Shown here one piece after another: positions 648 to 60,780 of a stretch of DNA of 64,000 bases. The notes below the pieces were generated by a model. The model worked only from the letters and a program-made list of their open reading frames with translations, did not search any database and was not told where the DNA came from. The position numbers and the translations under genes were made by a program. Location: positions 248,001 through 312,000 of the IMG/VR virus record IMGVR_UViG_3300032236_002285; one strand, written 5' to 3'. The number at the start of each line of letters is the position of its first letter. Positions within the stretch are counted from its first letter, which is position 1.

Positions 648-658
648 TATATACTATA

Positions 659-1132: not shown

Positions 1133-1143
1133 TATATACTCTA

Positions 1144-1536: not shown

Positions 1537-1566
1537 AAAAGCCCTCTTAATGAGGGCTTTCTTTTT
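1535..1566. terminator. bidirectional intrinsic terminator
   Basis: AAAGCCCTC-ttaat-GAGGGCTTT flanked by A/T runs, between convergent genes. Confidence 0.8.
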
Positions 1567-4501: not shown

Positions 4502-4577
4502 ATTTAAGGTTTTACATAAAGTTATGACACTACCATGACAATTCCAAAAATTATTTTTTTATTTAATATATACTTTA

Positions 4578-4979: not shown

Positions 4980-4983
4980 TAAG

Positions 4984-5577: not shown

Positions 5578-5654
5578 AGTGTATATATTAATTTTAAATT
5601 AATACAAACTGGATGTATATACATTTATATATACTAAAAATATAATCTTACGAT

Positions 5655-5849
5655 ATGGCAGCACCTAAAGACAAAATGTTCTCACTACGAATTCCTGAAA
5701 AACTCTTAAATGAATATAGAGAGTTTTGTGAAGAAAATTCTATTAACATTTCTATGAGATTAAGAAAATTTATTGAAAGAGACCTTGAGGGTTATAGGGC
5801 TAAAAAGCTTCAACAACAAATACAAAGAAAAAATAATAATCAATCTTAA
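5655..5849 (+). CDS. ribbon-helix-helix (CopG/Arc-like) DNA-binding protein
   Basis: MFSLRIPEKLLNEYREFCEENSINISMRLRKFIE beta-helix-helix pattern. Confidence 0.6.
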   Translation: MAAPKDKMFSLRIPEKLLNEYREFCEENSINISMRLRKFIERDLEGYRAKKLQQQIQRKNNNQS

Positions 5850-5859
5850 TATATAGATT

Positions 5860-7697: not shown

Positions 7698-7769
7698 GGG
7701 GTGGTAGCTTAATGGTGAAGCAATCGGCTGTTAACCGATAGATTATAGGTTCGAATCCTATCCACCCCG
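7698..7769 (+). tRNA. tRNA-Asn(GTT)
   Basis: GGGGTGG/CCACCCC acceptor; ATCGG-CTGTTAA-CCGAT; TTCGAAT T-loop. Confidence 0.9.
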
Positions 7770-7780
7770 CAAAAATAAAC

Positions 7781-7865
7781 TGGTAGGTACCCGAGCGGTC
7801 TTCAGGGACTAGTCTGATATACTAGGTGAGAAATCACGACGTGGGTTCAAATCCCACCCTACCAA
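7781..7865 (+). tRNA. tRNA-Ile(GAT) with long variable arm
   Basis: TGGTAGG/CCTACCA; CTAGT-CTGATAT-ACTAG; variable hairpin GTGA-GAAA-TCAC. Confidence 0.8.
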
Positions 7866-7871
7866 CAACAT

Positions 7872-7943
7872 TCACTGGTAGCTCAGAGGCAGAGCAACCG
7901 CCTGTTAAGCGGTAGGTCGGGATATCGTAATTCACCCAGTGAG
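7872..7943 (+). tRNA. tRNA-Asn(GTT), irregular T-arm
   Basis: TCACTGG/CCAGTGA, G73; CCGC-CTGTTAA-GCGG; T-stem poorly paired. Confidence 0.75.
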
Positions 7944-7949
7944 CAAAAC

Positions 7950-8028
7950 GCCTCAGTAGCCGAGGTCGCCTTCTAAGCGACTAATCGTAACGGAACTGAA
8001 AATGTAGGTTCGAATCCTACCTGGGGTA
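7950..8028 (+). tRNA. atypical tRNA-Arg(TCT): D-arm nearly absent, long variable region
   Basis: GCCTCAG/CTGGGGT; GTCGC-CTTCTAA-GCGAC; GTAGG-TTCGAAT-CCTAC. Confidence 0.65.
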
Positions 8029-8083
8029 CAAAAAAAAGGGACACTAGTCTTATTAATATATAAGTAAAATGTAGGTTTGTATT

Positions 8084-8914
8084 ATGTTAGACTTTGAAAA
8101 TATTCAAAAAGACTTTGAAAGTGGTCTTTTTTATCAAAAAGATATACTAATTAAGTATAGTATATCAATTAAAAAATTAAGAACTTTTGTAAAAAAAGGT
8201 TTATTGAATAAAGAAAATTGGAAATTAAAAAAATATGAAGTAAAAAGAGAAACAAAAAAGTTAATATCAGAAGGTAGAAAAAAATGGTTGAAAGAAAATA
8301 CATCTAAACATCCTTGGAGAAATGGAAATAAATCTAAGCCTTGTGAGGAGTTTAAGAAATTCTTAAAAAGTAGGAATATTTTCTTTTTGGAAGAGGTTAT
8401 GATTTCAAAAGAAAGATTCTATTCGGTTGATATTTTAATACCTGAGTTCACTTCGGTTGTAGAAATTAATGGTAATCAACATTATAAATCTAATGGAGAA
8501 CTTAAAGATTACTATAGTGAAAGAAATAGTTTTATAAAAAATAAAGGATGGTCGATATATGAAGTACACTACTCAATTGTTTATAATTTAGAAATGTGTG
8601 ATTCTATTTTAGAAAATATTAAAAATAATAATAAAATCGATATACCATTTTATATAAAAAATAAGAAAGAAAAAAAATATAAGAATAGGGAAGAGTACTG
8701 GAATAAAAGAAAAATTAATAAATTGAATAGTTATAGTGAAAGATTAAATGAATTAAAAAACAGTAGTATAGATTTTAAAAAGATTGGATGGGTTAAACTA
8801 GCATCTGAGATATTAAAAGTTAAAAATGTAAATAAACTATTAAAAGAAATCGATCCAGAATTTTATAAAAATTGTTATAAAAGAAAACAAAATGCCGAGG
8901 TGGTGGAATGGTAG
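8084..8914 (+). CDS. DUF559/Vsr-like PD-(D/E)XK homing endonuclease inserted in tRNA array
   Basis: FYSVDILIP..VVEINGNQHY..RNSFI..GWSIYEVHY; Lys-rich; last 21 nt overlap tRNA-Leu. Confidence 0.7.
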   Translation: MLDFENIQKDFESGLFYQKDILIKYSISIKKLRTFVKKGLLNKENWKLKKYEVKRETKKLISEGRKKWLKENTSKHPWRNGNKSKPCEEFKKFLKSRNIFFLEEVMISKERFYSVDILIPEFTSVVEINGNQHYKSNGELKDYYSERNSFIKNKGWSIYEVHYSIVYNLEMCDSILENIKNNNKIDIPFYIKNKKEKKYKNREEYWNKRKINKLNSYSERLNELKNSSIDFKKIGWVKLASEILKVKNVNKLLKEIDPEFYKNCYKRKQNAEVVEW

Positions 8915-8976
8915 ACACGCTAGCCTTAGAAGCTAGTACCCGCAAGGGTGTGTGGGTTCGAGTCCCACCCTCGGTA
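8894..8976 (+). tRNA. tRNA-Leu(TAG)
   Basis: GCCGAGG/CCTCGGT; CTAGC-CTTAGAA-GCTAG; type II variable arm. Confidence 0.9.
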
Positions 8977-9001
8977 CTGAAGTGAAACGAAAGTTCACTA
9001 C
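8977..9001 (+). repeat. 25-nt tRNA-Leu 3' trailer, copy 1
   Basis: CTGAAGTGAAACGAAAGTTCACTAC, identical to 9810-9834; GAAA-capped hairpin. Confidence 0.9.
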
Positions 9002-9010
9002 AAAAAAAAT

Positions 9011-9096
9011 TGATAGGTTGCCGTAGTGGCCGAACGGTCCGGACTGTTAATCCGGTGACGAATAGTCCATCGTGGGTTCGAATCCCACCCTGTCAG
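9011..9096 (+). tRNA. tRNA-Asn(GTT) with long variable region
   Basis: TGATAGG/CCTGTCA, G73; CCGGA-CTGTTAA-TCCGG. Confidence 0.8.
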
Positions 9097-9103
9097 CAAA
9101 TAT

Positions 9104-9175
9104 AGTCCTGTAGCTTAATGGGAAAGCGCTTGCCTTACATGCAAGAGAGAGTCGGATCGTTACCGACCAGGACTA
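9104..9175 (+). tRNA. tRNA-Val(TAC)
   Basis: AGTCCTG/CAGGACT; CTTGC-CTTACAT-GCAAG; T-loop ATCGTTA. Confidence 0.85.
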
Positions 9176-9181
9176 CAAAAT

Positions 9182-9255
9182 TGGACTGTAGCTCATTTGG
9201 TTAGAGCGCCACGCTGATACCGTGGAGGTGGTCGGATCGTAACCGACCAGTCCAA
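9182..9255 (+). tRNA. tRNA-Ile(GAT)
   Basis: TGGACTG/CAGTCCA; CCACG-CTGATAC-CGTGG; T-loop ATCGTAA. Confidence 0.85.
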
Positions 9256-9261
9256 CAACAA

Positions 9262-9345
9262 GGTACTATGGCCGAGTGGAGTCTTTAAGACGGGAGGCAG
9301 TGGTCTGCAAAACTTCTCACACTGGTTCGAATCCAGTTAGTACCT
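9262..9345 (+). tRNA. tRNA-Cys(GCA) with expanded D-loop
   Basis: GGTACTA/TAGTACC, U73; loop CTGCAAA; extra GTCT-TTA-AGAC hairpin in the D-loop. Confidence 0.75.
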
Positions 9346-9350
9346 CAAAC

Positions 9351-9422
9351 GCTTCTTAAGCATTAATGGTGATGCACTAGTCTTGTAAACTAGAGAAATC
9401 GGATCGTTACCGGTAAGAAGCT
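9351..9422 (+). tRNA. tRNA-Thr(TGT)
   Basis: GCTTCTT/AAGAAGC; CTAGT-CTTGTAA-ACTAG. Confidence 0.85.
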
Positions 9423-9428
9423 CTAAAT

Positions 9429-9500
9429 TGTTCTGTAGCTCAATGGTAGAGCGCTTCTGTGACATGGAAGAGGTAGTCGGATCGTTACCGACCAGGACAA
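9429..9500 (+). tRNA. tRNA-Val(GAC)
   Basis: TGTTCTG/CAGGACA; CTTCT-GTGACAT-GGAAG. Confidence 0.8.
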
Positions 9501-9525
9501 CAAAATAATGGATGGTGATTAAGAG

Positions 9526-9598
9526 TGTTACTTCGTGAAATGGTATACACATTTGTCTTAAAAACAAACTTTTGAGGGTTCAAGTCCCTCAGTAAAAT
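9526..9598 (+). tRNA. degenerate tRNA-Leu(TAA)-like element lacking the variable arm
   Basis: Leu-type D-arm GTGAAATGGTATACAC; TTTGT-CTTAAAA-ACAAA; GAGGG-TTCAAGT-CCCTC; acceptor stem has a mismatch. Confidence 0.55.
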
Positions 9599-9625
9599 CA
9601 CTCTTTGAACTTTCCTCCATTATAT

Positions 9626-9709
9626 GCCGATGTGGCTCAGTGGCGACAGCACTGGTTTTGTAAACCAGAGACGAATAGTCCAACGGGGGTTCGAGTCCCT
9701 CCATCGGCT
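9626..9709 (+). tRNA. tRNA-Thr(TGT) with long variable region
   Basis: GCCGATG/CATCGGC; CTGGT-TTTGTAA-ACCAG. Confidence 0.85.
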
Positions 9710-9724
9710 CAAAATAAATCACCT

Positions 9725-9809
9725 GCCTGGGTGGTGGAACGGTAGACACGCTGGACTTAAAATCCAGTGGGCAGTAATGCCCGTGAGGGTTCGAGTCCCT
9801 CTCCAGGTA
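9725..9809 (+). tRNA. tRNA-Leu(TAA)
   Basis: GCCTGGG/TCCAGGT; CTGGA-CTTAAAA-TCCAG; type II arm. Confidence 0.9.
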
Positions 9810-9834
9810 CTGAAGTGAAACGAAAGTTCACTAC
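9810..9834 (+). repeat. 25-nt tRNA-Leu 3' trailer, copy 2
   Basis: Identical to 8977-9001. Confidence 0.9.
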
Positions 9835-9840
9835 TAAATT

Positions 9841-9911
9841 ATTGGGATAGTTTAATGGTAAATCGTGGGCCTGATATGCCCGTGTTCTTGGTTCGATTCC
9901 AGGTCTCAATA
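9841..9911 (+). tRNA. tRNA-Ile(GAT)
   Basis: ATTGGGA/TCTCAAT; TGGGC-CTGATAT-GCCCG. Confidence 0.8.
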
Positions 9912-9916
9912 CAAAC

Positions 9917-9988
9917 TTCGATATGGCCTATTGGTAGGGTGCAGGGGGACATGTTCCTGAGGACTTGGTTCGATTCCAGGTATCGATA
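9917..9988 (+). tRNA. tRNA-like element, anticodon undetermined (8-nt loop GGACATGT)
   Basis: Acceptor, D- and T-arms present (CTTGG-TTCGATT-CCAGG); non-canonical anticodon loop. Confidence 0.5.
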
Positions 9989-9995
9989 CAAACAT

Positions 9996-10082
9996 CGCGG
10001 GGTAGAGTAGAGGTCAAACTCACTGGGCTCATAACCCAGGGTTGCGCAAGTGACACGTCAGGTTCGAATCCTGCCCCCGCTA
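9996..10082 (+). tRNA. initiator-type tRNA-Met(CAT) with long variable arm
   Basis: Unpaired C1:U72; three consecutive G-C pairs in CTGGG-CTCATAA-CCCAG; extra GTTGC-GCAA-GTGAC hairpin. Confidence 0.8.
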
Positions 10083-10088
10083 CAACAA

Positions 10089-10161
10089 GCAGTCATCGTA
10101 TAGTAGGTGATTACACCACCTTGGTACGGTGGAGATTCCGGTTCGAATCCGGGTGATTGCT
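10089..10161 (+). tRNA. tRNA-Thr(GGT)
   Basis: GCAGTCA/TGATTGC; CCACC-TTGGTAC-GGTGG. Confidence 0.85.
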
Positions 10162-10166
10162 CAAAT

Positions 10167-10247
10167 GCCCAGATGGTGGAATGGTATACACGCCAGTCTA
10201 AGAAGCTGGTTCCTTCGGGATTGAGAGTTCGAGTCTCTCTCTGGGCA
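10167..10247 (+). tRNA. tRNA-Leu(AAG)
   Basis: GCCCAGA/TCTGGGC; CCAGT-CTAAGAA-GCTGG; Leu-type D-arm and variable arm. Confidence 0.85.
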
Positions 10248-10255
10248 CAACATAC

Positions 10256-10340
10256 GCCGGTGTGATCCGATGTGGTAATGGAGTTCGGCTCATATCCGAA
10301 TTGGTTTATCCTATTGCTGGTTCGACTCCAGCCACCGGTA
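10256..10340 (+). tRNA. tRNA-CAT (elongator Met or lysidine Ile2), long variable region
   Basis: GCCGGTG/CACCGGT; TTCGG-CTCATAT-CCGAA. Confidence 0.75.
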
Positions 10341-10345
10341 CAAAT

Positions 10346-10426
10346 GTCAGAATGGTGGAATGGTATACACGCTAGTTTCAAAAACTAGTGCCGAAAGGTA
10401 TGAGAGTTCAAATCTCTCTTCTGATA
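10346..10426 (+). tRNA. tRNA-Leu(CAA)
   Basis: GTCAGAA/TTCTGAT; CTAGT-TTCAAAA-ACTAG. Confidence 0.88.
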
Positions 10427-10448
10427 CTCGATAAAATAAAAAATAAAA

Positions 10449-14834: not shown

Positions 14835-14866
14835 TAAATTTATATTAAAAAATAATATATATGGAC

Positions 14867-16486
14867 ATGAAATACATTAAAACTAGAAATAGATTTCTTG
14901 CTGAATCAAAAGGTGAAATGAGCGACAACGCTCTTCATACACTTGCGACTCATGATGATGGACAATCTCCTGATGTTCAAAAAAGTTTGGATGCACTTGA
15001 CGAGGTTTCTCCTAAAGGTAAAGTGGTAACTCGTTTTGCTCCTTCACCAACAGGATTTTTACATATCGGAGGTGTTCGTACAGCTCTTTACAACTACTTG
15101 TTTGCTAAAAAACACGGTGGTATCTTTTATGTTCGTATTGAAGATACTGACCAAAAACGTTTTGTAGGCGATGCTGAAAAATATATTCAAGACGCTTTAG
15201 AATGGTGTGGTATTGACCCAGATTATGCACCTTGGAAAGGTGGTCCTAATGGACCTTACCGCCAATCGGAAAGAGATTATTCTGGTCATATTCAAACTCT
15301 TTTAGATAAGGGTATGGCTTACTATGCTTTTGATACAGAAGATGATATGGTTAAAGTAAGAGCTGAAAATGCTCACTTTGCTTACGATACTAAAACTCGT
15401 ATGTCAATGAAGAACTCACTCTCTTTATCTAAAGAAGAAGTTGATGCACTTCTTGCTGCTAATACTCCATTTGTAATTCGCTTCAAAACACCAGAAAATA
15501 GAACTATCACCGTTAATGATGTAATTCGTGGTGAAGTTAGTTTGAATACAAATCAAACTGATGATAAAGTTTTGGTTAAATCAAATGGTATTCCTACATA
15601 TCATATGGCTAACGTATGTGACGACCACGATATGGGAACTACTCACGTTATTCGTGGTGAAGAATGGTTGCCTTCAACTCCACTTCACTTAATGTTATAT
15701 GAAGCATTTGGTTGGGAAGCTCCTACATTTGCTCACCTACCTCTAATTTTGAATCCTGATGGTAAAGGTAAGTTGTCTAAACGTAAAGCTTTAGCTTTAG
15801 GTATTCCAGCTTTCCCAATGGGTGGTGAAGGTGAAGATGATAAAGGTCAAAAAGTAAAGTATCTTGGTTTCAAAGATGAAGGTTTTGAACCACAAGCTAT
15901 GTTGAATTTCTTGGTGCTTTTAGGTTGGTCCCCAACAGATACTCAAGAACTTATGACTATGGCTGACATGATTTCTAAATTTGACTTAGCTCATGTTCAT
16001 AAGGCTGGTGCTCGTTTTGATGTTGAAAAAGCTAAACACTTTAATGCTCAACACTTGAACACTTATAGAAGTGATGAAGAAATTCTTTCACATATTGATA
16101 TGGGTGATACCTATCATTACTCACCAGAAAATCTTTCTAAGATTGTGGATATCTGTAAAAAGAGAGCAGTCTTTACTAAAGATTTACAAGCTGTTGCTGA
16201 TATCTTCTTTAAGCCAATTGTGATTAAAGAAACAGATGTTAAGTTATTAACTGATGATTACAAAAAAGTATTCTCAGTTTTTGTAACTAAGTCAATTGAT
16301 TGGACGGCTGAAACTATTAAACAAACAATTCACGACATTTGTCAAGAAATAGGTGTTAAAATGGGTAAGATAATGCCTGCTTTAAGATTGGCTATTGCTG
16401 GTGGATTACCAGGTCCAGATTTGGCAACAACAATGGAAATAATTGGTAGGGATGAAACCTTAATAAGAATTAAAAACACTTTATAA
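14867..16486 (+). CDS. gltX: glutamyl-tRNA synthetase with ~50-aa N-terminal extension carrying the capsid-targeting-like tag
   Basis: VVTRFAPSPTGFLHIGG, RIEDTD, HVIRGEEW, KLSKRK; starts MKYIKTRNRFLAES 5 nt after TAATATATA (14853-14861). Confidence 0.92.
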   Translation: MKYIKTRNRFLAESKGEMSDNALHTLATHDDGQSPDVQKSLDALDEVSPKGKVVTRFAPSPTGFLHIGGVRTALYNYLFAKKHGGIFYVRIEDTDQKRFVGDAEKYIQDALEWCGIDPDYAPWKGGPNGPYRQSERDYSGHIQTLLDKGMAYYAFDTEDDMVKVRAENAHFAYDTKTRMSMKNSLSLSKEEVDALLAANTPFVIRFKTPENRTITVNDVIRGEVSLNTNQTDDKVLVKSNGIPTYHMANVCDDHDMGTTHVIRGEEWLPSTPLHLMLYEAFGWEAPTFAHLPLILNPDGKGKLSKRKALALGIPAFPMGGEGEDDKGQKVKYLGFKDEGFEPQAMLNFLVLLGWSPTDTQELMTMADMISKFDLAHVHKAGARFDVEKAKHFNAQHLNTYRSDEEILSHIDMGDTYHYSPENLSKIVDICKKRAVFTKDLQAVADIFFKPIVIKETDVKLLTDDYKKVFSVFVTKSIDWTAETIKQTIHDICQEIGVKMGKIMPALRLAIAGGLPGPDLATTMEIIGRDETLIRIKNTL

Positions 16487-23257: not shown

Positions 23258-23329
23258 AGTCCGTGGGTATGTTGGTATGAATAACCTCCTGTCACGGGGA
23301 AGAAGCCGGTTCGATTCCGGTACGGACTG
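23258..23329 (+). tRNA. tRNA-Asp(GTC)
   Basis: AGTCCGT/ACGGACT, G73; loop CTGTCAC. Confidence 0.85.
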
Positions 23330-23334
23330 CAAAA

Positions 23335-23408
23335 CGAGAAGTGACTAAGGTTTTAAGCACGCGCCGTCTGGAGCGGTGAGTTAGCAGGTTCGATTCCTGT
23401 CTTCTCGA
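23335..23408 (+). tRNA. tRNA-Pro(TGG)-like with atypical anticodon loop
   Basis: C1:G72 and A73 (CGAGAAG/CTTCTCG-A); CGCCG-TCTGGAG-CGGTG has C33 and A37. Confidence 0.6.
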
Positions 23409-23471
23409 CAACAAGTAGCTTTTGAGGCGAAAAATACTCTTTAGAGAATAGAGTAAAACAATTCTCAAAAT

Positions 23472-23544
23472 GGTCTCGTGGTTGAATGGTTACAATACCA
23501 CCCTGTCACGGTGCGAGATGCCGGTTCGATTCCGGTCGAGACCG
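23472..23544 (+). tRNA. tRNA-Asp(GTC)
   Basis: GGTCTCG/CGAGACC, G73; loop CTGTCAC. Confidence 0.9.
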
Positions 23545-23549
23545 CAAAA

Positions 23550-23620
23550 GGACATATAGCTTAAAAGGAAAGAGTACCTCCAGTGGGAGGGGAGTCTTGG
23601 TTCAAGTCCAGGTATGTCCG
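23550..23620 (+). tRNA. tRNA-like element, anticodon undetermined (shortened loop)
   Basis: GGACATA/TATGTCC, G73; D- and T-arms intact; CCTCC-AGTG-GGAGG. Confidence 0.5.
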
Positions 23621-23626
23621 CAAAAA

Positions 23627-23698
23627 GGTCTATTAGGGTAGTGGTTATCCTTCCCGACTGTCTATCGGGAGACACCGGTTCGAATCCGGTATAGACCG
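23627..23698 (+). tRNA. tRNA-Asp(GTC)
   Basis: GGTCTAT/ATAGACC; CCCGA-CTGTCTA-TCGGG. Confidence 0.88.
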
Positions 23699-23745
23699 CA
23701 AATGGGCTTTTCAAGACAAAAAGTTTGTAGATTACTTAATGAAAC

Positions 23746-23820
23746 GGTCTAGTGGTGAAGTGGCTATCATATCTGCCTGTCACGCAGAAGTAGAGGGATC
23801 GAAACCCTTCTAGACCGCCA
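23746..23820 (+). tRNA. tRNA-Asp(GTC), CCA encoded
   Basis: GGTCTAG/CTAGACC-GCCA; TCTGC-CTGTCAC-GCAGA. Confidence 0.9.
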
Positions 23821-23826
23821 AAAATT

Positions 23827-23901
23827 CGGGGTGTAGCGTAGTCCGGTTATCGCGCATGCTTTGGGAGCATGAAATCGTAGGTTCGAATCCTGCCACCCCG
23901 A
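23827..23901 (+). tRNA. tRNA-Pro(TGG)
   Basis: CGGGGTG/CACCCCG-A; CATGC-TTTGGGA-GCATG. Confidence 0.92.
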
Positions 23902-23932
23902 CAAAGAAACAAAATATTAATAAATAGAAATT

Positions 23933-23986
23933 ATGAGAACAACAACACAATACCAGCAACAACAACAAATTAATCCAACGGATTGA
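23933..23986 (+). CDS. attenuator leader peptide 3, MRTTTQYQQQQQINPTD
   Basis: Six Gln codons (CAA x5, CAG x1) in 17; TGA lies inside segment 2 of a 1:2/2:3/3:4 hairpin set. Confidence 0.85.
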   Translation: MRTTTQYQQQQQINPTD

Positions 23987-24014
23987 TAACGGTATCGTAT
24001 TGTCTAAACTTTAC

Positions 24015-24048
24015 AAACCCTATTCAATCTGATTGAGTAGGGTTTTTT
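24015..24048 (+). terminator. attenuator terminator upstream of tRNA-Gln x3 and glnS
   Basis: AAACCCTATTCAA-tctga-TTGAGTAGGGTTT plus T-run, ending 2 nt before tRNA-Gln. Confidence 0.88.
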
Positions 24049-24050
24049 AT

Positions 24051-24121
24051 TGTCTGATGGTGTAGTGGTAGCACAAGGGTCTTTGATCCCCTTAGTTCAG
24101 GTCCGATTCCTGATCAGACAA
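24051..24121 (+). tRNA. tRNA-Gln(TTG)
   Basis: TGTCTGA/TCAGACA; loop CTTTGAT; T-loop TCCGATT. Confidence 0.8.
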
Positions 24122-24128
24122 CAAATAT

Positions 24129-24210
24129 TGAGGAATAGAATAATGGCAGTTCACCCGCCTTTGAAGCGGAGAGAGAAATCTCAGTGTAGGTTCGAGTCCT
24201 ACTTCCTCAA
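24129..24210 (+). tRNA. tRNA-Gln(TTG) with long variable arm
   Basis: TGAGGAA/TTCCTCA; CCGC-CTTTGAA-GCGG; GAGA-GAAA-TCTC arm. Confidence 0.82.
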
Positions 24211-24216
24211 CAAAAT

Positions 24217-24288
24217 TGCTTTATAGTATATGGGTTAACATATCTGTCTTTGAAACAGATGAACTTGGTTCGAGTCCAAGTGGAGCAA
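24217..24288 (+). tRNA. tRNA-Gln(TTG)
   Basis: TGCTTTA/TGGAGCA; TCTGT-CTTTGAA-ACAGA. Confidence 0.85.
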
Positions 24289-24306
24289 CAAAAAATAATA
24301 ACTACT

Positions 24307-25911
24307 ATGAATTTCATTGAAGAAAAAATAATTGAAAAAGGTAATCTTGATAAACTAACATTGAGATTTCCACCAGAACCAAATGGCTATTTACATATTG
24401 GTCACGCTAAATCCATTATCTTAAATTTTGGTTTAGCTGAAAAATATAATAGACCTTGTAACTTGAGATTTGATGATACTAACCCAACTACCGAAGATAC
24501 TCACTTTGTTGAGTCAATTATAAAAGATATAGAATGGTTAGGTTACAAACCCGCCAATATTTTCTATACATCTGATTATTTTGATTTTCTTTATGAATGT
24601 GCTATTACTTTAATTAAAAAAGGATTAGCTTATGTTGATGATTCAACATCAGAAGAAATTGCTAACTTAAAAGGAACACCAACTTCACCTGGTAAAGATT
24701 CACCTTATAAGTCAAGAAGTGTTGATGAAAATTTAGACCTATTTAATAGAATGAGATTAGGTGAATTTGTAGAAGGTTCTAAAATTCTTAGAGCTAATAT
24801 TGATATGACTTCTCCTAATATGATTTTAAGAGATCCAGTTCTTTATAGAATAATATCTAAGTCACACCACAGAACTGGTGATACTTGGAAGATTTATCCA
24901 ATGTATGACTTTGCTCATCCACTTTCAGATTATAAAGAAGGTATTACCGATTCTTTATGTACTTTAGAATTTGAAGTTCACAGACCTTTATATATGTGGG
25001 TTTTAGAAAATTGTGATTTAGAAAATCCGCTTCCAGAAGAAACTGAGTTTGCTCGTTTGAACATTGACTATACGGTTATGTCAAAGAGAAAATTAAAAAG
25101 ATTAGTTGAAGAAGGATTTGTAGATGGTTGGGATGATCCAAGAATGCCAACTATTTCTGGTTTAAGAAGAAGAGGTTTTACTCCAAATGCTATTAAAGAT
25201 TTTTGTGATAGAATTTCTGTTACAAGAAAAGATGGTATTGTTTCTTATTTACTTTTAGAAGAATGTTTAAGAACTGATTTGAACATAGTTACCAATAGAT
25301 TAATGGGTGTTATGGATCCAGTTAAGTTAGTTATTACTAATTGGGATAGCGGAACTGAAATGGTTGAAGTTGAAAATAATCCTGGTGATGAAAGTGCTGG
25401 TACAAGAATGATTCCTTTTAGTGGTGAACTATTTATTGAAAGAGAAGATTTCAGAGAAGAAGCTAATAATAAATTTCATAGATTGAAATTAGGTGGTGAA
25501 GTAAGATTAAAAGGCGCTTATGTTATTATGGCTAACGAAGTTATCAAAGATGAATTTGGAGAAATCACTGAGATTAGATGTACTTACGATCCTTTAACAA
25601 GATCAGGTATGTCTATTGAAAGAAAGATTAAAGGAACTATTCACTGGGTATCTGCTGAACACGGAGTTAGAATGAATGTAAATGAATATGATAGATTATT
25701 TAATGATGGATCACCAGATAAAAATGAAGATGATTTTATCAATTATATCAACCCAGATTCACTTATAATTAATGATAAGGCAATCTTTGAACCTCACGTT
25801 TTAAACGTCAAGGAACCAGTTCAAATGATGAGAAAAGGGTATTATATTTTAGATACTGATGGTAAAAGTTTCAATAAAACGGTAAGTTTAAAAGAAGGTT
25901 GGGTAGGTTAA
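24307..25911 (+). CDS. glnS: glutaminyl-tRNA synthetase
   Basis: RFPPEPNGYLHIGHAKS, RFDDTNP, IYPMYDFAH, SLCTLEF, VMSKRKL, GWDDPRMPTISGLRRRG; start moved to ATG 24307 (ORF-track start lies inside a tRNA). Confidence 0.95.
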   Translation: MNFIEEKIIEKGNLDKLTLRFPPEPNGYLHIGHAKSIILNFGLAEKYNRPCNLRFDDTNPTTEDTHFVESIIKDIEWLGYKPANIFYTSDYFDFLYECAITLIKKGLAYVDDSTSEEIANLKGTPTSPGKDSPYKSRSVDENLDLFNRMRLGEFVEGSKILRANIDMTSPNMILRDPVLYRIISKSHHRTGDTWKIYPMYDFAHPLSDYKEGITDSLCTLEFEVHRPLYMWVLENCDLENPLPEETEFARLNIDYTVMSKRKLKRLVEEGFVDGWDDPRMPTISGLRRRGFTPNAIKDFCDRISVTRKDGIVSYLLLEECLRTDLNIVTNRLMGVMDPVKLVITNWDSGTEMVEVENNPGDESAGTRMIPFSGELFIEREDFREEANNKFHRLKLGGEVRLKGAYVIMANEVIKDEFGEITEIRCTYDPLTRSGMSIERKIKGTIHWVSAEHGVRMNVNEYDRLFNDGSPDKNEDDFINYINPDSLIINDKAIFEPHVLNVKEPVQMMRKGYYILDTDGKSFNKTVSLKEGWVG

Positions 25912-36642: not shown

Positions 36643-38775
<2,133 letters not shown>

Positions 38776-53601: not shown

Positions 53602-54270
53602 TTATTGAAAATCAACTCTGTCTTTTTTAATCACTCTATTTATGTATGAATTTAGTGGTTGTAAGTTTGTATAATGATTTAATTTTATTACATCATCTTC
53701 TGATTTAGCAGTTGATAGTGGTATTATATGATCAATATCCCAGAATGTTCCGTGGTTTTCCCAAGTCATTTCTGATGTAAATTTTTCTTCAATATAATTT
53801 TTGAAAAAAGTTACATCACAGCCTAAAATTTCAAATGTTTTTGATTTTTTTGTATAGTTTTTATTTTTGAATGCTTTTCTTATCATAGAGGATATTGAGA
53901 ATTTCAATTTAAATAAAGGATCTGATTTTCTTCTTTCTCTCTGATAGTTTGATTTATATTCTGTAATCTTCTCTTTATTTAACTTAGCGTGTTCGGATTT
54001 ATACTTTTTTATTTTTTCTTTGTTGTTTGTAGCATAATTCTTTTGATAATCCAACTTACTATCTCTGTTTGATTTATAGTTTTCTTTTAACCTTTCAAGA
54101 ATTTCATCTTTATTTGAGTCATAATAATTACTCATGTATTCTTTAATTTTTTCTGAGTTTTTCTGTCTATGATTTTTTTTATACTCAAACATGCATTTTT
54201 TACAAGAGTTTCTACCCCTAACAAAAAGATCTATTTCTTTTTCCTCTCCACATTTTATACACTTTTTCAT
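53602..54270 (-). CDS. HNH homing endonuclease
   Basis: N-terminal CxxC..CxxC; TWENHGTFWDIDHIIPL..NHYTNLQPL..N; start moved to ATG 54270. Confidence 0.85.
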   Translation of the reverse strand: MKKCIKCGEEKEIDLFVRGRNSCKKCMFEYKKNHRQKNSEKIKEYMSNYYDSNKDEILERLKENYKSNRDSKLDYQKNYATNNKEKIKKYKSEHAKLNKEKITEYKSNYQRERRKSDPLFKLKFSISSMIRKAFKNKNYTKKSKTFEILGCDVTFFKNYIEEKFTSEMTWENHGTFWDIDHIIPLSTAKSEDDVIKLNHYTNLQPLNSYINRVIKKDRVDFQ

Positions 54271-54341
54271 AAAGTATATATAAAAAAAATAAGGGTTCCT
54301 TGAAAAAAGAACCACTTATTTTTGATTGATTGACTTTTTGA

Positions 54342-55528: not shown

Positions 55529-56104
55529 TTAAATGAAATAACCTTTTAAGAAATCAATTAATCTATTACCAACTTCAATTTTCTCTTCGTTTGGATTCCA
55601 CATTGGTCTTTCATAAGCCCAATTTGCCAAAACCTGAGCTTTTGTAAGATATTCTACAGCATCTTCTAAAATAGTAATAATTTGTTCTGGTTCAACATTT
55701 TCACCTTCCTCAATATGCTTTTTAAGATCTTCAACAGAATCATCAAATCCCATTTCAATAGTACCTATAATAGCTTGAAATGCTACTTGTAAGGCTTGCA
55801 TATTATATTCGGATTTAAGTTTCTCTAACTTGTTATCCATAACTAAAACTCTAAATTTAAATTGATCCTCATCTGATAAATCATACTTATCAACCATGTC
55901 TTCAATGATACTTAGAATATCTTCACCATCAGAGACTCTATACATAAACTCTTGTTTATTTGACTTTGGTAAAGCTTTAGCAAATTGCTCAGCTTGATAT
56001 CCAATATTATATTTATCGGGGTTAGCATTATATGATTTTATAGTTGATTTAAAATCATCAGATAATGATTCAATAAATAATTTAAAGTTTTTTATATTTT
56101 TCAT
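55529..56104 (-). CDS. hypothetical protein, MKNIKNFKLFIES tag family
   Basis: N-terminal tag. Confidence 0.6.
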   Translation of the reverse strand: MKNIKNFKLFIESLSDDFKSTIKSYNANPDKYNIGYQAEQFAKALPKSNKQEFMYRVSDGEDILSIIEDMVDKYDLSDEDQFKFRVLVMDNKLEKLKSEYNMQALQVAFQAIIGTIEMGFDDSVEDLKKHIEEGENVEPEQIITILEDAVEYLTKAQVLANWAYERPMWNPNEEKIEVGNRLIDFLKGYFI

Positions 56105-56889
56105 TTTGATTTAATTACTTTTATTCTTTCCAATTGATACTTCATAATATCAACTTCTTGATTCTGTTTTAAGAAATCAACTATTTTTTGATACATCTGT
56201 ATGGTAATCCTGCAGTCTGTAAGAGCATCGTGATAGTTTGTCATATTAATTCCAAGCGCTGGTCCTACTTTAGACATTGATGATGATATTAATCCACCAT
56301 CTCTATCAGATGTTCCAATAAAATTAATTATATCTTTATATTTAACATCAGTTTCAGCCAATGCTTGTAATAGTGGTAGGTAGTATAATTGAATTAACAT
56401 CTTAGTGTCAAATACTTCATTCTTAATTTTATGACCATATCTACCAGATAACATAGCCATATCAAAAGCAGCATTTTGTGCTATAAGTAAACAAGGTTCG
56501 TAATTACCAACCCAATCAAAGAACTGATCTAATATTTCTTGTTCATTTTTATATTTGAACTTACCGGAACCATAATGATTGAATCCTAAAACCCATTTAG
56601 TTTTATCACCAGGTTTACTAAATTTTGACTTAGTTTCATCAGTTAGTTTAATCTTCTCATCAAATAAACCTAATTCTTTGAATGTATTTGAATTAAAATT
56701 ATAATCAGTAGACAAACAAGATACTTGAGTTAATTGTTGTTTCTTAGGACCACCCAACCCAGTCGTCTCGGTATCTATGAACAACCACTTTAAATTAGAT
56801 TTTGACTCAATCCAATTGAGAATCTCTGGTATACTTTTATACCACATCTTATTCTCATTAATTAATTCACTATATTTTAATATTTTCAT
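56101..56889 (-). CDS. DEDDh 3'-5' exonuclease (DnaQ-like) with N-terminal tag
   Basis: FIDTETTG, AQNAAFD, HDALTDC; MKILKYSELINE; late motif at 56894-56902. Confidence 0.8.
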   Translation of the reverse strand: MKILKYSELINENKMWYKSIPEILNWIESKSNLKWLFIDTETTGLGGPKKQQLTQVSCLSTDYNFNSNTFKELGLFDEKIKLTDETKSKFSKPGDKTKWVLGFNHYGSGKFKYKNEQEILDQFFDWVGNYEPCLLIAQNAAFDMAMLSGRYGHKIKNEVFDTKMLIQLYYLPLLQALAETDVKYKDIINFIGTSDRDGGLISSSMSKVGPALGINMTNYHDALTDCRITIQMYQKIVDFLKQNQEVDIMKYQLERIKVIKSK

Positions 56890-56984
56890 AAACTATATAT
56901 TAAAACCTATACTATGTTTTTTATTTTGGGTTGATACAGAAAGACATTAAAAAATTAATATATAAGTAAAATAGAATTTTATAT

Positions 56985-57746
56985 ATGAAAAATTGTTTAA
57001 AGTGTAATGAGGATATAACAAAAAGAGGTGCTAGATTTAAATATTGTAAAGAATGTTCAGAGATATCAAAAAAAGAATCTTATAAAAAATATCTAAGTAG
57101 TGAAGATGTTAAAATTTCAAAAAATAAATATAGCAAAGAATATTACAAAGAAAATAAAGACAAATTAAAACCAGTTAGAAAAAAATGGAGGGAAACTAAT
57201 TCACAAAAAGAGAAAAATTACAATAAAGATAGATATCAATCATTTGATAAAGAAAGATTATCAAACTACTACACCGAGAATAAAGAAGAAATAAATAGAA
57301 AAAAATTAGAATATAGAAAAACTGAAGAGTATAAAAAATGGATATCTGAATATAGAATAAAAAATGCTCATAAGCAAAGATATAGAGATTCATTAAAATC
57401 TGTTATTAGGCGACTTAACCGTGATAAAAATGATTATACAAATAATCTATTAGGATATAGTGATTTAGAATTTAAGTTACATATAGAAAGCCAATTCACT
57501 GAAAAAATGAGTTGGTCTGAAAGAAAATCATTTGAAATTGACCATATCATACCAATAGTTGCTTTTATAGAAAATACTCCTTTGTCTATTGTTAGTTCTT
57601 TAGAAAATTTAAGACCAATGGATCCTGAAGATAATATTAAAAAATATACATCTCTGGATTATAACTATATTGAATTGTATGAAAAATATATTGAATTTTT
57701 AACGGATGATTATAAGAGTAAGGTATTGGATTATATTTCAAAGTAA
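56985..57746 (+). CDS. HNH homing endonuclease
   Basis: N-terminal CxxC..CxxC; FEIDHIIPI..SLENLRPM..NIKK. Confidence 0.8.
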   Translation: MKNCLKCNEDITKRGARFKYCKECSEISKKESYKKYLSSEDVKISKNKYSKEYYKENKDKLKPVRKKWRETNSQKEKNYNKDRYQSFDKERLSNYYTENKEEINRKKLEYRKTEEYKKWISEYRIKNAHKQRYRDSLKSVIRRLNRDKNDYTNNLLGYSDLEFKLHIESQFTEKMSWSERKSFEIDHIIPIVAFIENTPLSIVSSLENLRPMDPEDNIKKYTSLDYNYIELYEKYIEFLTDDYKSKVLDYISK

Positions 57747-58276
57747 ATCTTTTCACCATTTGATAGTGAATAACAAATTTTATTTACATTCTTAACTTCG
57801 TATTTATAATCGGGTTTTACATATTTCTTACCAGTTCCTTTCTTAACATAAGAAATTGTAATATGTGGCTTGTAATCAGGGAATTGATCCGAGTTAGGAA
57901 ATTTAGACAACTCATCGTGTAAATGTTGTAAAGCACCATCCGGTATTACATTAAACTTAACAACATCAAATTTATCGTTTTTTTCAAATATACCTATACC
58001 ATCTACTTTAATATTAATATCATCTGAATAGTTCTCAAATACTGATTTAACCATTTCAGGAGTTACATCATCATGTAAACCATATAAAATAGTAACATGT
58101 GGATTATCTTGAATGCCTTTAGGATCATCATTTTCATCACCGTAAAATATGTCTTCTGGATCAATAGATGATGTTATTTCATCCCAGTTACTTACCGGAA
58201 TATTAATCATTACACAGCCATATTTATGACCGTTAATTGATTCATTTACAAATTGTATATAGTTTTTAATTATCAT
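57731..58276 (-). CDS. 2H phosphoesterase, T4 gp57B/Acb1-like, with N-terminal tag
   Basis: Two HxT motifs, PHVTILY and FPDYKPHITISY; begins MIIKNYIQFVNES. Confidence 0.75.
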   Translation of the reverse strand: MIIKNYIQFVNESINGHKYGCVMINIPVSNWDEITSSIDPEDIFYGDENDDPKGIQDNPHVTILYGLHDDVTPEMVKSVFENYSDDINIKVDGIGIFEKNDKFDVVKFNVIPDGALQHLHDELSKFPNSDQFPDYKPHITISYVKKGTGKKYVKPDYKYEVKNVNKICYSLSNGEKIYFEI

Positions 58277-58704
58277 ATTTTACCTTGTATTATTATTCTA
58301 TTAGTTTCCCATAAATTATTATATGAAAATTCGAAATCAAGTCCAGTTTCATCGTGCAATCTTTTTATAGCGATTATAAAATCCTGATAATCTTCTGAAG
58401 AAAAATTCACAGAATTGGTTGTTGTTCTTTTTTCCCAAGAAATATCACCACTAGAGTTTATCTCTCCTGTAAATTCAAATTTCTTATAATTATAAGGATC
58501 ATACGAAAATATATGATCCTTTTCTCGTTTTTTCATTATATATTTGAAATGTGGCATTGGATGATATGATAAATTATTATCTGGGTCTTGTGACCAATAC
58601 CAACCATTATCTTCAAACTCTTGAAAACAATCTTTAATAGTATCAAAAACTTGTTGATAGATTTTTTCCTCTATTGATTCATTAAATCTTTTAAGATATT
58701 TCAT
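58273..58704 (-). CDS. hypothetical protein, MKYLKRFNES tag family
   Basis: Start moved to ATG 58704, 7 nt from the late motif (58712-58720). Confidence 0.65.
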   Translation of the reverse strand: MKYLKRFNESIEEKIYQQVFDTIKDCFQEFEDNGWYWSQDPDNNLSYHPMPHFKYIMKKREKDHIFSYDPYNYKKFEFTGEINSSGDISWEKRTTTNSVNFSSEDYQDFIIAIKRLHDETGLDFEFSYNNLWETNRIIIQGKI

Positions 58705-58841
58705 ATATCTATATATATTATTTGTTGTAATCAAATTTATTTTATATCTTTGTAATGTTAATTTCTTCTTAGATAGAATTTAATTGGTGGCACAAGGACG
58801 GACTCGAACCCAGATTGTTAAACAAATTAAATTAAAGAATT

Positions 58842-59930
58842 ATGAGTAATTTTAAAGTATCTAAAGAAAAAATCGAGCTCTTCGTTCACCCGAACGCTGA
58901 CGCTCTTGAACTCGCAAAAATTGGTTCTTACCAAGTAGTAGTTCAAAAAGGTCTTTACACGACCGGTGATGAGGTAATCTTCGCACCTGAAAAATCTGTT
59001 CTAACCGGACAGCTTAAATCAGAGTACGAAAAATATCTTTCTGGTCCAAATAAAGATAGGGTAAAGGCGGTTCGTCTTAGAAATGAAATCTCTTCTGGGA
59101 TTATCATTCCAAAAGAATTAGTTCCTAACTTTGAAAGCTATACGGTTGGTGTAGATATTTCAGAGGATTTAGGAATCACTAAATACGAACCACCAATTCC
59201 AGTTCACTTGGCTGGAAGTGTGACAAGATTTGATATGCCACACATCGGAAATCACGACTGCGAACATGCAAATGTTTATGTTAATGATTTAGTACCAGGT
59301 GAAAGAGTTGTTATCACTGAGAAAGTACATGGGTCTCAATTCATCTTAGCACATGAGATTGAAACTGAGAAAACGATTGTAAGTTCTAAGGGTATGTTAA
59401 AAGCCGGATTGTCTTTACAAGATGAAGAAGGTAACACATACTGGGTAGCGGCTAGGAACGATAATATCATTGGTAGAATTAGAAATAATTTTACAGAAGG
59501 TGTTGTTCAAGTGTTTGGTGAGGTTATTCCAGTTCAAAGTGGATATAACTACGGACAAACAAAACCAACCGCAAGGTTGTTTGATGTTAGGGTAAATGGC
59601 AAATCCATTCCTTACGATATGGTACCTGATGAATTGAGAGAGTTGTGGGTACCAATCATTTACGATGGTACTCTTAATTTAGAATCTAAAGAAGTAGTTC
59701 TTTATGAAGATGAATCAAGAGGAATCCGTAAGACAAGAGTTGACTTCATCCTTCCAAAAGATGTCGTAGAACTTTGTAAGGGAAAAGAGTTAGTGTCTGG
59801 TCAAGAATTACATATCCGTGAAGGTGTTGTACTTCGTCCTTACATTGACCGTGATGCTAAAGATGGTACTAAACTTAGGTTGAAAATCATCAACCCGGCA
59901 TACAAGGAATCCGGAGAAGAAATTAACTAA
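58842..59930 (+). CDS. RNA ligase, DRB0094/Rnl5-like with N-terminal tRNA-binding OB domain
   Basis: HPNADALEL..VVQKG..LRNEISSG (OB domain); TEKVHGS (motif I), VFGE, LFDV, REGVVL, LKIIN. Confidence 0.85.
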   Translation: MSNFKVSKEKIELFVHPNADALELAKIGSYQVVVQKGLYTTGDEVIFAPEKSVLTGQLKSEYEKYLSGPNKDRVKAVRLRNEISSGIIIPKELVPNFESYTVGVDISEDLGITKYEPPIPVHLAGSVTRFDMPHIGNHDCEHANVYVNDLVPGERVVITEKVHGSQFILAHEIETEKTIVSSKGMLKAGLSLQDEEGNTYWVAARNDNIIGRIRNNFTEGVVQVFGEVIPVQSGYNYGQTKPTARLFDVRVNGKSIPYDMVPDELRELWVPIIYDGTLNLESKEVVLYEDESRGIRKTRVDFILPKDVVELCKGKELVSGQELHIREGVVLRPYIDRDAKDGTKLRLKIINPAYKESGEEIN

Positions 59931-59933
59931 AAG

Positions 59934-59962
59934 AAAAACCCACTCATTTGAGTGGGTTTTTT
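59934..59962. terminator. bidirectional intrinsic terminator
   Basis: AAAAACCCACTCA-tt-TGAGTGGGTTTTT between convergent genes. Confidence 0.75.
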
Positions 59963-60252
59963 TATTCTTCGTCTTTGTGAATTAATTTAATTTCATCTTG
60001 CCATCCTTCTGGAAGTTCTTCCTCTTCTTCTGTATCAAAATCAAAACCCATTGAAACAAGATAATTCATTACTGAGTTTATCATAATATCATCAGCACCT
60101 CTTTCTTTCATATAATCTTCAAAATCTTCTACCGTATAAGAACCTTTCTCAGCTCTTAACTCTTCTAATTTAGGTAATATATCTACTGCGATATCTTCAT
60201 GAATATCAGAATCTATTTTACCGTATGCTTCAAATGTTTTTAAGTATTTCAT
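59962..60252 (-). CDS. acidic hypothetical protein, MKYLKTFEAY tag family
   Basis: N-terminal tag. Confidence 0.6.
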   Translation of the reverse strand: MKYLKTFEAYGKIDSDIHEDIAVDILPKLEELRAEKGSYTVEDFEDYMKERGADDIMINSVMNYLVSMGFDFDTEEEEELPEGWQDEIKLIHKDEE

Positions 60253-60261
60253 ATAACTATA

Positions 60262-60780
60262 TTATTTTTTTGACCAGATAGATTTATTAAAAACCTTTTC
60301 AGCTTCAGACTTTATTACAGAATACAATTGAGAGAATTTATTTAAATCAAATGGCGCTTCTTCGTCTGATTCAAAGTAACAATTTTGTATAAACTCTAAA
60401 GGTGGACAAGCCGCAACAACTCTATTGATATATTCTTCTTCATCAAAATCTCTATTGTGAATACTACTATCAATATTCATTAAGTTTCTGTATTTCTCAC
60501 GGTTATAAGTTCCTATTTGTTGCATTATAGGATCTAATAAGATTGAAATATCAACTATTGTTTGAGTTAAGTTTTGCTCTTTACTCGTAGCTTGTGTTAA
60601 CAATAATAAGCCGGTAAATGCTCTAGATAAAACTAAGTGTGGTACAACATTTGTACCACGAACCGTGCCTTTCCATTTTAACTCATGTTTAAATTGGTCA
60701 TTATATACAACAAAACTATCATTTATATAATCATCAAGTGTATATTTTGATGATTCATTAAATCTCTTTAAGTGTTTCAT
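60262..60780 (-). CDS. hypothetical protein, MKHLKRFNES tag family
   Basis: N-terminal tag. Confidence 0.6.
   Translation of the reverse strand: MKHLKRFNESSKYTLDDYINDSFVVYNDQFKHELKWKGTVRGTNVVPHLVLSRAFTGLLLLTQATSKEQNLTQTIVDISILLDPIMQQIGTYNREKYRNLMNIDSSIHNRDFDEEEYINRVVAACPPLEFIQNCYFESDEEAPFDLNKFSQLYSVIKSEAEKVFNKSIWSKK

Follow-up and report, generated by a model that had tools for sequence, protein, structure and literature searches.

Of the described systems close to the locus examined here, three need an introduction. The first is Acb1 (T4 gp57B and its counterpart in Erwinia phage FBB1; PDB 7T26 and 7T27; Pfam PF23474), a phage 2H phosphoesterase that cleaves 3'3'-cGAMP or cA3 on the 3' side of adenosine through a cyclic-phosphate intermediate. 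It is defined by a HxT/HxT tetrad, an aromatic clamp of Y12, W74, F107, and W147, E141 as the residue that contacts adenine, and residues 145-152 as a C-terminal lid (PMC9117128). The second is the polyvalent proteins, which Iyer, Burroughs, Anand, de Souza, and Aravind predicted in 2017 to be packaged and injected with the phage DNA for counter-defence (PMC5512222). The same study states that polyvalent and solo 2H domains had never been observed with RNA ligases and hence may be RNases or degraders of nucleotide signals, and a review of jumbo phages gives 2H enzymes two roles, counter-signalling and RNA repair (PMC7824862). The third is the set of T4 internal proteins, diverse defence proteins whose only common feature is an N-terminal capsid-targeting sequence (PMC3012670); the T4 prohead protease gp21 is specific for cleavage after I/L-x-Glu (PMC12991175). 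The gene of interest here lies at positions 57731-58276 of a 64,000-nucleotide stretch of DNA (the window; positions 248,001 to 312,000 of IMG/VR record IMGVR_UViG_3300032236_002285). It encodes a 2H protein that begins with a short leader peptide, and an earlier sequence-only reading had proposed that the product is an Acb1-like 2H phosphoesterase with a packaging tag, delivered from the capsid as a pre-loaded enzyme against CBASS (antiphage signalling that is based on cyclic oligonucleotides). As described below, the leader turned out to be a property of the phage proteome rather than of this one enzyme, and the 2H domain belongs with the polyvalent type. The features of the gene, in window coordinates, are as follows.

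57731-58276, minus strand: predicted 2H phosphoesterase gene, ATG start, 181 amino acids, stop codon included
58238-58276, minus strand: N-terminal leader, residues 1-13, MIIKNYIQFVNES, a one-residue-shorter variant of the tag that ends in V-N-E and then S
58091-58099, minus strand: first HxT motif, H60-V-T62, with H60 and T62 invariant in the homologue alignment
57857-57865, minus strand: second HxT motif, H138-I-T140, inside PDYKPHITISY, with H138 and T140 invariant and aligned to Acb1 H113-x-T115
57821-57844, minus strand: basic loop KKGTGKKY, residues 145-152, a subfamily hallmark that has no counterpart in T4-type Acb1

Both HxT motifs of the sequence-only reading can be read directly from the DNA, and its 13 N-terminal residues are as given there. 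The likeness that it saw between the second motif and that of T4 gp57B also held: FPDYKPHITISY and FDDYTPHITLSY share 9 of 12 residues, and the T4 string given in that reading is exactly the one encoded by the T4 57B gene. Invariance was judged on an alignment of 48 homologues, across which the HxT/HxT residues and loop residues G147, G149, and Y152 do not vary and K150 and K151 are nearly invariant. The predicted structure is a confident two-lobed 2H α/β fold, and the generic 2H model of Pfam (PF13563) matches with 41.6 bits as compared to 30.9 bits for the Acb1 model (PF23474, cut-off 27). Judged by its motifs and modelled fold, the gene product is most probably an intact 2H phosphoesterase, with catalysis predicted. 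The leader stands apart from this fold. Residues 1-15 have a predicted local distance difference test (pLDDT) score <50, with a helix at residues 6-14, and compact 2H structures all align from model residue 18 onward. The leader residues are an add-on outside the catalytic fold and not part of the enzyme.

The same leader heads many other proteins of the phage. Of the 622 genes predicted in the whole phage genome, ∼77 (∼12%) start with the tag M-K-[HY]-L-K-x-[FY], usually followed by a hydrophobic-x-Glu. The pattern M-[KRIN]-x-[ILVMF]-[KRQ]-x-[FY] was found at 49 first Met, five early Met, and one deep internal Met among the 3508 Met encoded by these genes. A position matrix derived from the tags reached at least 6 bits at 67 of 622 N-termini versus 2 of 2420 internal Met, and the one-residue-shorter variant carried by the 2H protein was present at 10 further N-termini versus one internal site. 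When the leader pattern was searched at the DNA level together with a reversed-pattern control, 40 versus 5 matches were obtained here, 66 versus 4 in the sister phage LR745206, 8 versus 1 in T4 (ipI among them), and 0 versus 1 in Maribacter phage Molly. Synonymous codon use at the conserved tag positions equals that of the genome, which argues that selection acts on the leader peptide. The leader is retained by each of the 196 close homologues of the 2H protein, by some of them at full length, and the 2H ortholog of phage Molly has none and starts directly before strand 1. In one relative (P0128), the gene that lies upstream of the 2H gene in our window is fused with the 2H domain into one protein; there, the leader stands only at the extreme N-terminus and the 2H domain keeps just 'VNES'. 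The leader exists, is specific to N-terminal positions, and is conserved at the protein level.

Its carriers have several properties in common. A hydrophobic-x-Glu ending at residues 7-15 is present in 60 of 77 tagged proteins as compared to 130 of 545 untagged ones (p 4e-20), and the residue after the leader Glu is most often Ser, as in the 2H protein (V10-N11-E12, then S13). The tagged proteins are acidic (net charge −3.8 per 100 amino acids versus −1.1 for the rest), their genes are clustered (39 of the 77 lie next to another tagged gene, with 17.8 expected), and 49 of 54 have no Pfam domain. The shorter variant is also found on the CCA-adding enzyme of the phage (MKLKRYNQFLES; PolyA_pol, 105 bits; genome 378728-379897, L022:5505-6674), whose gene belongs to a nine-gene tagged array, and on a protein with a DxDxT motif and a borderline Pfam match to DUF2608; a P-loop kinase carries a weaker leader match. 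A full-text literature search for the leader strings returned unrelated papers only. We found no literature description of the proteome-wide leader of this clade of huge phages or of its labelling of solo polyvalent-protein domains. As a separate observation, large multidomain relatives in other viruses (P0184, P0217, P0237, P0239, P0242, P0257, P0268, and P0270) have in common another N-terminal motif, approximately (I/L)-x-R-E-I-W-x-L-N-E. Hydrophobic-N-Glu again stands at its end, and the motif may be the counterpart of the leader in another clade.

The identity of the 2H domain was addressed by profile-profile comparison of its family with a reference alignment of 20 T4-type Acb1 proteins. 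The match had a probability of 95.4% and an E-value of 1.8e-8 and covered only Acb1 columns 40-121. Within this region, F132 of the 2H protein aligns to Acb1 F107, and Acb1 W74 lands beside the invariant F97-E98. The strand of Acb1 Y12 falls outside the aligned region, with Y19 as a candidate counterpart, and no counterpart was found for E141 or for the lid (residues 145-152, with W147), the profile alignment stopping at Acb1 column 121. Scores against the 2H family profile were 11-22 bits for T4/FBB1-type Acb1 proteins, as compared to 117 bits for the ortholog in the Maribacter phage and at least 148 bits for polyvalent-type domains; phmmer of the 2H protein against PDB 7T26 gave an E-value of 0.12. 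Because the alignment covers columns 40-121 only and the family-profile scores are low, we did not file the protein as a T4-type Acb1, and membership of that family is not supported, given the 11-22-bit scores and the unaligned lid, E141, and W147. The Pfam Acb1 model is not specific either, because it also matches 2H domains fused to CCA-adding enzymes; passing this model should not alone name a phage 2H protein an anti-CBASS nuclease. Of the Acb1-like identity first proposed, the intact 2H domain and the Pfam-level likeness to Acb1 stand and the T4-type membership does not. In structural comparison, Acb1 gave the highest identity (21-22%) with an alignment nearly end to end, and the C-terminus of the 2H protein was modelled as two β-strands forming a hairpin, with no Trp and no Acb1-type lid. 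We have lowered the claim that the protein is an Acb1; that it works like an Acb1 may still hold. Two observations were made on the Acb1 proteins themselves: those of the T4 type share the N-terminus M-K-F-x-D-F-S ahead of strand 1, and the crystallised FBB1 chain (P0330) has 144 amino acids, 8 fewer than the full-length protein (P0326, 152 amino acids).

Taken together, the 2H protein and Acb1 share the 2H fold, the HxT/HxT tetrad, the PDYxPHIT string, the F132/F107 position, small size, and phage origin. They differ in that the 2H protein has no alignable C-terminal lid, E141, or W147, has a KKGxGKKY loop that is not present in the Acb1 alignment as well as an insertion of ∼30 residues after strand 1, and is encoded among genes for tRNA and RNA enzymes. 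A second comparison is with ThpR/LigT and the tRNA ligase CPD domain, which share with the 2H protein the fold, a weak match to NCBIfam ThpR (TIGR02258), and surroundings that include an RNA ligase, a kinase, and a CCA-adding enzyme. However, the TIGR02258 score of 30.2 bits is far under the equivalog cut-off of 65.7 (T4 Acb1 has no match), and linkage to an RNA ligase is not conserved in relatives.

The closest kin were found among polyvalent-type proteins. A profile search with the 2H family found 5345 clusters, and 57 of the best 150 matches are longer than 300 amino acids. In a Pfam census of 56 multidomain relatives, 16 have a PolyA_pol (CCA-adding) head, 15 of these with its RNA-binding domain too; six have ART-PolyVal, three a second domain of the tRNA_lig_CPD type, and one each Mom, a SAM lyase, and an ADP-ribosyl toxin domain. 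The 2H consensus of these relatives shares YGC[VL]M, PHxTxLYG, FENxxFDVVKF, and PDYxPHxTIAYVKKGxGKKY. The fusion to CCA-adding enzymes is absent from PMC5512222, in which 'CCA' occurs 0 times. On sequence grounds, the 2H protein is best placed as a stand-alone member of the polyvalent-type phage 2H subfamily: it has in common with the polyvalent 2H domains (PMC5512222) the sequence subfamily (at least 148 bits), the hallmark motifs, and relatives that contain ART-PolyVal, Mom, and SAM-lyase domains, and it differs in being solo behind a short leader and not fused into a giant protein, MuF, or portal. The subfamily has been described before, and an injected phage 2H domain of this kind as a possible destroyer of immune nucleotide signals was already predicted in 2017 (PMC5512222); the 2H protein is a new member. 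Searches of the genome for ART-PolyVal and MuF domains found none, and no second 2H gene was found in it.

The leader resembles the capsid-targeting sequence of T4 internal proteins IPI-III in several respects. Both are ∼10-13 residues long, start with M-K-x-hydrophobic-[KQ]-x-F, end with hydrophobic-x-Glu, and occur on diverse, fast-evolving, mostly orphan carriers encoded in arrays by a phage with a gp23-type capsid. T4 ipI starts with MKTFKEF, and a loose regular expression of the leader matches it. The major capsid protein encoded by the genome is of the T4 Gp23 type (91.8 bits); its N-terminal propeptide can be aligned to the T4 gp23 propeptide and contains I-N-E-N, like V-N-E-S of the leader. 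The differences are that the likeness is not statistical, that ∼77 acidic carriers are present as compared to a handful, and that the carriers include enzymes such as the CCA-adding enzyme. We thus dropped the statement that the tag is a T4 capsid-targeting sequence, since the matrix did not rank the T4 internal proteins top. What survives of the packaging tag first proposed is a real add-on on ∼12% of the proteins with a hydrophobic-x-Glu end; quantitatively, it is not a T4 capsid-targeting sequence. On the T4 side, we also observed that gp61.1 (L033, start 19130) has the same first 21 nt and the same MKTFKEF as ipI (L001, start 73878).

The neighbourhood of the 2H gene consists of the following features.

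55529-56104, minus strand: tagged gene, starting MKNIKNFKLFIES, downstream of the exonuclease
56101-56889, minus strand: DEDDh (RNase T/DnaQ-like) 3'-5' exonuclease, PF00929 35.2 bits
56985-57746, plus strand: HNH-like endonuclease, weak Pfam HNH match (E 0.053), with 16 nt of overlap between its 3' end and that of the 2H gene
58273-58704, minus strand: upstream tagged gene (MKYLKRFNES) with no known domain, whose stop overlaps the 2H start in ATGA
58709-58722, minus strand: promoter-like element TAATATATATAG, which starts 16 nt before the ATG of the upstream tagged gene and heads the two-gene unit with 2H
58842-59930, plus strand: ATP-dependent RNA ligase, DRB0094 type, with N-terminal OB domain (TIGR02306 254.5 bits, cut-off 151; PF09414, PF21189)
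59962-60780, minus strand: two tagged genes, MKYLKTFEAY (59962-60252) and MKHLKRFNES (60262-60780)

The ATGA overlap suggests translational coupling of the 2H gene with the upstream tagged gene, for which a search of the ESM Atlas returned viral hypothetical proteins only. On the other side, the exonuclease in the window is 65% identical to residues 222-474 of P0125, a protein with the same architecture as a single 438-amino acid open reading frame (ORF) of LR745206 (L027:8001-9317) that consists of leader, 2H domain, and exonuclease. The HNH-like insert is absent where the 2H domain and exonuclease share one ORF (LR745206 and P0125). Because the HNH-like gene sits at the position of the linker in these sister phages, a 2H-exonuclease fusion appears to have been split by a mobile endonuclease, and the 2H gene would be the ancestral partner of the DEDDh exonuclease, with the HNH gene now between them. 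A similar HNH-like gene (53602-54315) lies on the other flank of gp32.

The RNA ligase gene is transcribed divergently from the two-gene unit that holds the 2H gene. In relatives L009 and L011, the conserved order is ribonucleotide reductase (RNR) small subunit, 2H, and gp32. Because these two relatives are without RNA ligase adjacency, the argument for an RNA-repair operon was down-weighted. Contigs from four freshwater metatranscriptome assemblies were also compared with window positions 56000-60000. Contigs that are ∼93-95% identical cover the RNA ligase alone (window 58812-59940), and their sequence to either side of it differs from that of the window; the ligase is therefore placed in other contexts in relatives. 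For the 2H gene, no usable contig coverage was found in these four metatranscriptomes; the RNA ligase is well represented in the RNA libraries.

The promoter-like element is one of many in the genome. The motif WATATATAV, which was widened to this form after a first version missed the capsid and protease genes, has 232 genome copies, of which 155 are on the sense strand and no more than 60 nt ahead of a start codon. The motif stands before 36 of 77 tagged genes as compared to 115 of 545 untagged genes (p 4e-6) and is found upstream of the capsid and protease genes. The spacing between motif and start codon falls into two sharp classes, 10-14 nt and 25-34 nt, the nearer of which would imply leaderless or nearly leaderless mRNAs. 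The genes for gp32 and the RNR small subunit are preceded by TATAAATA-like elements instead.

The window is part of a single contig of 476,236 bp with 29.9% G+C, of which ∼93% is coding under the standard bacterial code. The nearest database records are uncultured phages of 634-642 kb, and public runs that contain the sequence are mainly freshwater metagenomes. A 978-amino acid protein (window 1565-4501, minus strand) ends in a type IX secretion CHU_C domain, which hints at a host from the Bacteroidota. The genome encodes a gp32 homologue, a protein of 720 amino acids (genome 59876-62038) that weakly matches the family of the T4 prohead protease (Peptidase_S77, 20.5-22.9 bits, cut-off 27), a single CCA-adding enzyme, and two P-loop kinases. 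Its 53 tRNA genes include many duplicates (Lys ×4, Glu ×4, Asp ×4, and Gln ×3). Among isoacceptors whose tRNAs are usually short, several measure 83-88 nt, and ARAGORN reported two odd tRNA genes with anticodons of 4 nt or 2 nt (window 7698-10427 and 23258-24289; genome 255698-258427 and 271258-272289); these odd or long genes may be intron-bearing or decoy tRNAs. Further features of the window are as follows.

14861-16486 and 24250-25911, plus strand: two class I aminoacyl-tRNA synthetases of Glu/Gln type
36643-38775, plus strand: ClpA/ClpB-like double AAA+ unfoldase
123-6903: array of six tagged genes with untagged genes between them, at 123-647, 659-1132, 1144-1536, 4578-4979, and 5860-6903 (plus strand) and 4984-5577 (minus strand)

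In this array, a small acidic protein family with 'LELxDxG(F/Y)' forms tandem repeats behind the leader (window 123-1536); in some relatives, members of this family are fused to the 2H C-terminus (C-terminal half of P0053).

The explanation that we tentatively prefer, and which we would still put somewhat below even chances, is that the 2H protein is a solo polyvalent-type 2H enzyme for RNA-end counter-defence and that its leader is a prohead-targeting propeptide. In this scheme, the 2H protein would be translated in tandem with the upstream tagged gene and act on 2',3'-cyclic-phosphate chemistry, healing RNA or tRNA 3' ends that have been cut by metal-independent RNases of the host, and it would work with the exonuclease, the phage CCA-adding enzyme, the kinases, and the RNA ligase. 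The leader, as an amphipathic M-K-[HY]-L-K-x-[FY] helix, would draw proteins into the assembling prohead and would be removed after Glu by the T4-like prohead protease, such that the 2H protein and the tagged CCA-adding enzyme could enter the cell with the DNA. Among possible substrates, RNA or tRNA 3' ends with a 2',3'-cyclic phosphate are favoured over CBASS signals because of the fusions to CCA-adding and RNase T-like enzymes, the basic loop, and the heavy investment in tRNA; we hold this preference with less than even confidence.

That the leader is a packaging signal is, in our estimate, a little short of an even proposition. It is favoured by the precedent of the T4 internal proteins with their gp21 cleavage site, the MKTFKEF start of ipI, the capsid propeptide with its I-N-E-N, the WATATATAV element upstream of capsid, protease, and many tagged genes (the two-gene unit with 2H among them), and the presence of the tagged domain types in proteins for which injection has been predicted. 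Several points weigh against it or against the scheme as a whole. Under the leader matrix, the T4 internal proteins rank 19 (ipI), 215 (ipIII), and 506 (ipII) of 1992 Met, and no T4 N-terminus reaches 6 bits. The 77 putative cargo proteins are far more than T4 has and are acidic where the T4 internal proteins are basic. The match to the S77 protease is below the Pfam cut-off, and late expression from WATATATAV would be putative. The proteome of the cultured megaphage G did not contain the Acb1 annotated in that phage. With regard to RNA repair, the relatives L009 and L011 have no RNA ligase within 6 kb of the 2H gene, and PMC5512222 argues that polyvalent-type 2H domains are unlinked to RNA ligases and may be signal degraders or RNases.

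The alternative that fares best keeps the leader as real and gives it a role outside the capsid: a signal for a compartment or partner, a degron for a phage-encoded unfoldase of the Clp type, a stabilising or expression-favouring start, or a recombination handle. We consider it a serious if somewhat doubtful contender. It would account for a leader on ordinary cytoplasmic enzymes (the CCA-adding enzyme and, with its weaker match, the P-loop kinase), for the number and acidity of the carriers, and for the failure to recover the T4 capsid-targeting sequences, and it fits with the ClpA/B-like AAA+ protein in the window and the tandem arrays of tagged genes. Yet the genome-like codon use at the tag positions speaks against an element that acts at the nucleotide level, the conserved hydrophobic-x-Glu-Ser end suits a protease site, tagged genes have WATATATAV in common with those for the capsid and the protease, and the kinds of domain that bear the tag here are also present in proteins for which injection has been predicted (PMC5512222).

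Next comes an Acb1-like enzyme that opens the cyclic oligonucleotides of CBASS or of type III clustered regularly interspaced short palindromic repeats (CRISPR) systems and is delivered pre-made from the capsid. We regard this as doubtful though possible, and cleavage of cyclic oligonucleotides in the manner of Acb1, taken as the substrate question alone, is our second choice and also rather unlikely. The Pfam score above cut-off, the profile-profile probability, and the top rank of Acb1 by structural identity all lean this way, as does the nearness of PDYKPHITISY to PDYRPHITLSY in phage FBB1 and FDDYTPHITLSY in T4. Cleavage of cyclic messengers is known for many divergent 2H enzymes of phages (bioRxiv 10.1101/2025.08.21.671373), degradation of signals by an injected 2H domain is the 2017 prediction cited above, and a CBASS-blocking virion protein has been reported (bioRxiv 10.1101/2025.07.23.666291). 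Against this stand the partial profile alignment with its unmatched lid, E141, and W147, the β-hairpin C-terminus, the low scores of Acb1 proteins on the family profile, and the lack of specificity of the Pfam model; in addition, phage 2H enzymes from two structural groups were inactive on all 18 messengers tested (bioRxiv 10.1101/2025.08.21.671373). The timing argument of the sequence-only reading, that delivery from the capsid would neutralise immune messengers before phage gene expression, is also weak: the CBASS signal in T4 arises late in infection (PMC12991175), which weakens the case for pre-loading. The joint claim of a pre-loaded anti-CBASS enzyme is improbable.

A third alternative is that the leader serves as a substrate lid of the 2H enzyme, as in PDE-9 of phage BCSR5 (9Q2G/9Q2Y) or the penguinpox cGAMP phosphodiesterase. 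Residues 1-15 of PDE-9 act as a lid, and such lids are modelled at low confidence (bioRxiv 10.1101/2025.08.21.671373), much like residues 1-15 here, which contain the aromatic Y6 and F9 in a protein without an Acb1-type C-terminal lid. However, the extension of PDE-9 is a lid specific to that enzyme, whereas the leader is proteome-wide and heads ∼77 unrelated proteins, most of them with no known domain; the Maribacter ortholog has no leader, and in P0128, it has moved to the new N-terminus. Because of this distribution, a lid is highly unlikely as the main role. Equally improbable is a 2H domain that is itself a nuclease, a 3' exoribonuclease of the Usb1 type directed against host RNA, since identity to Usb1 is 6-7% and the repeated fusion to CCA-adding enzymes fits repair better than attack.

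Returning to the leader as a prohead-targeting propeptide, its broadest form would be a freshwater clade of huge phages in which one universal N-terminal leader loads some seventy mostly orphan proteins for co-injection, an extension that we consider possible and rather doubtful. The co-injected cargo would then include a toolkit for RNA ends and nucleotide signals that consists of the 2H protein (with or without the exonuclease), the CCA-adding enzyme, and possibly a kinase. If true, such a set would do the work of a polyvalent protein that has been split up into parts, each with its own address. Should the leader be a packaging signal, enzymes for tRNA ends or immune nucleotides could be delivered before phage gene expression, and the injected proteome of uncultured huge phages, ∼12% of their genes, could be read out from sequence only. 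If the leader is something else, it would still mark one in eight proteins with an address label under strong selection.

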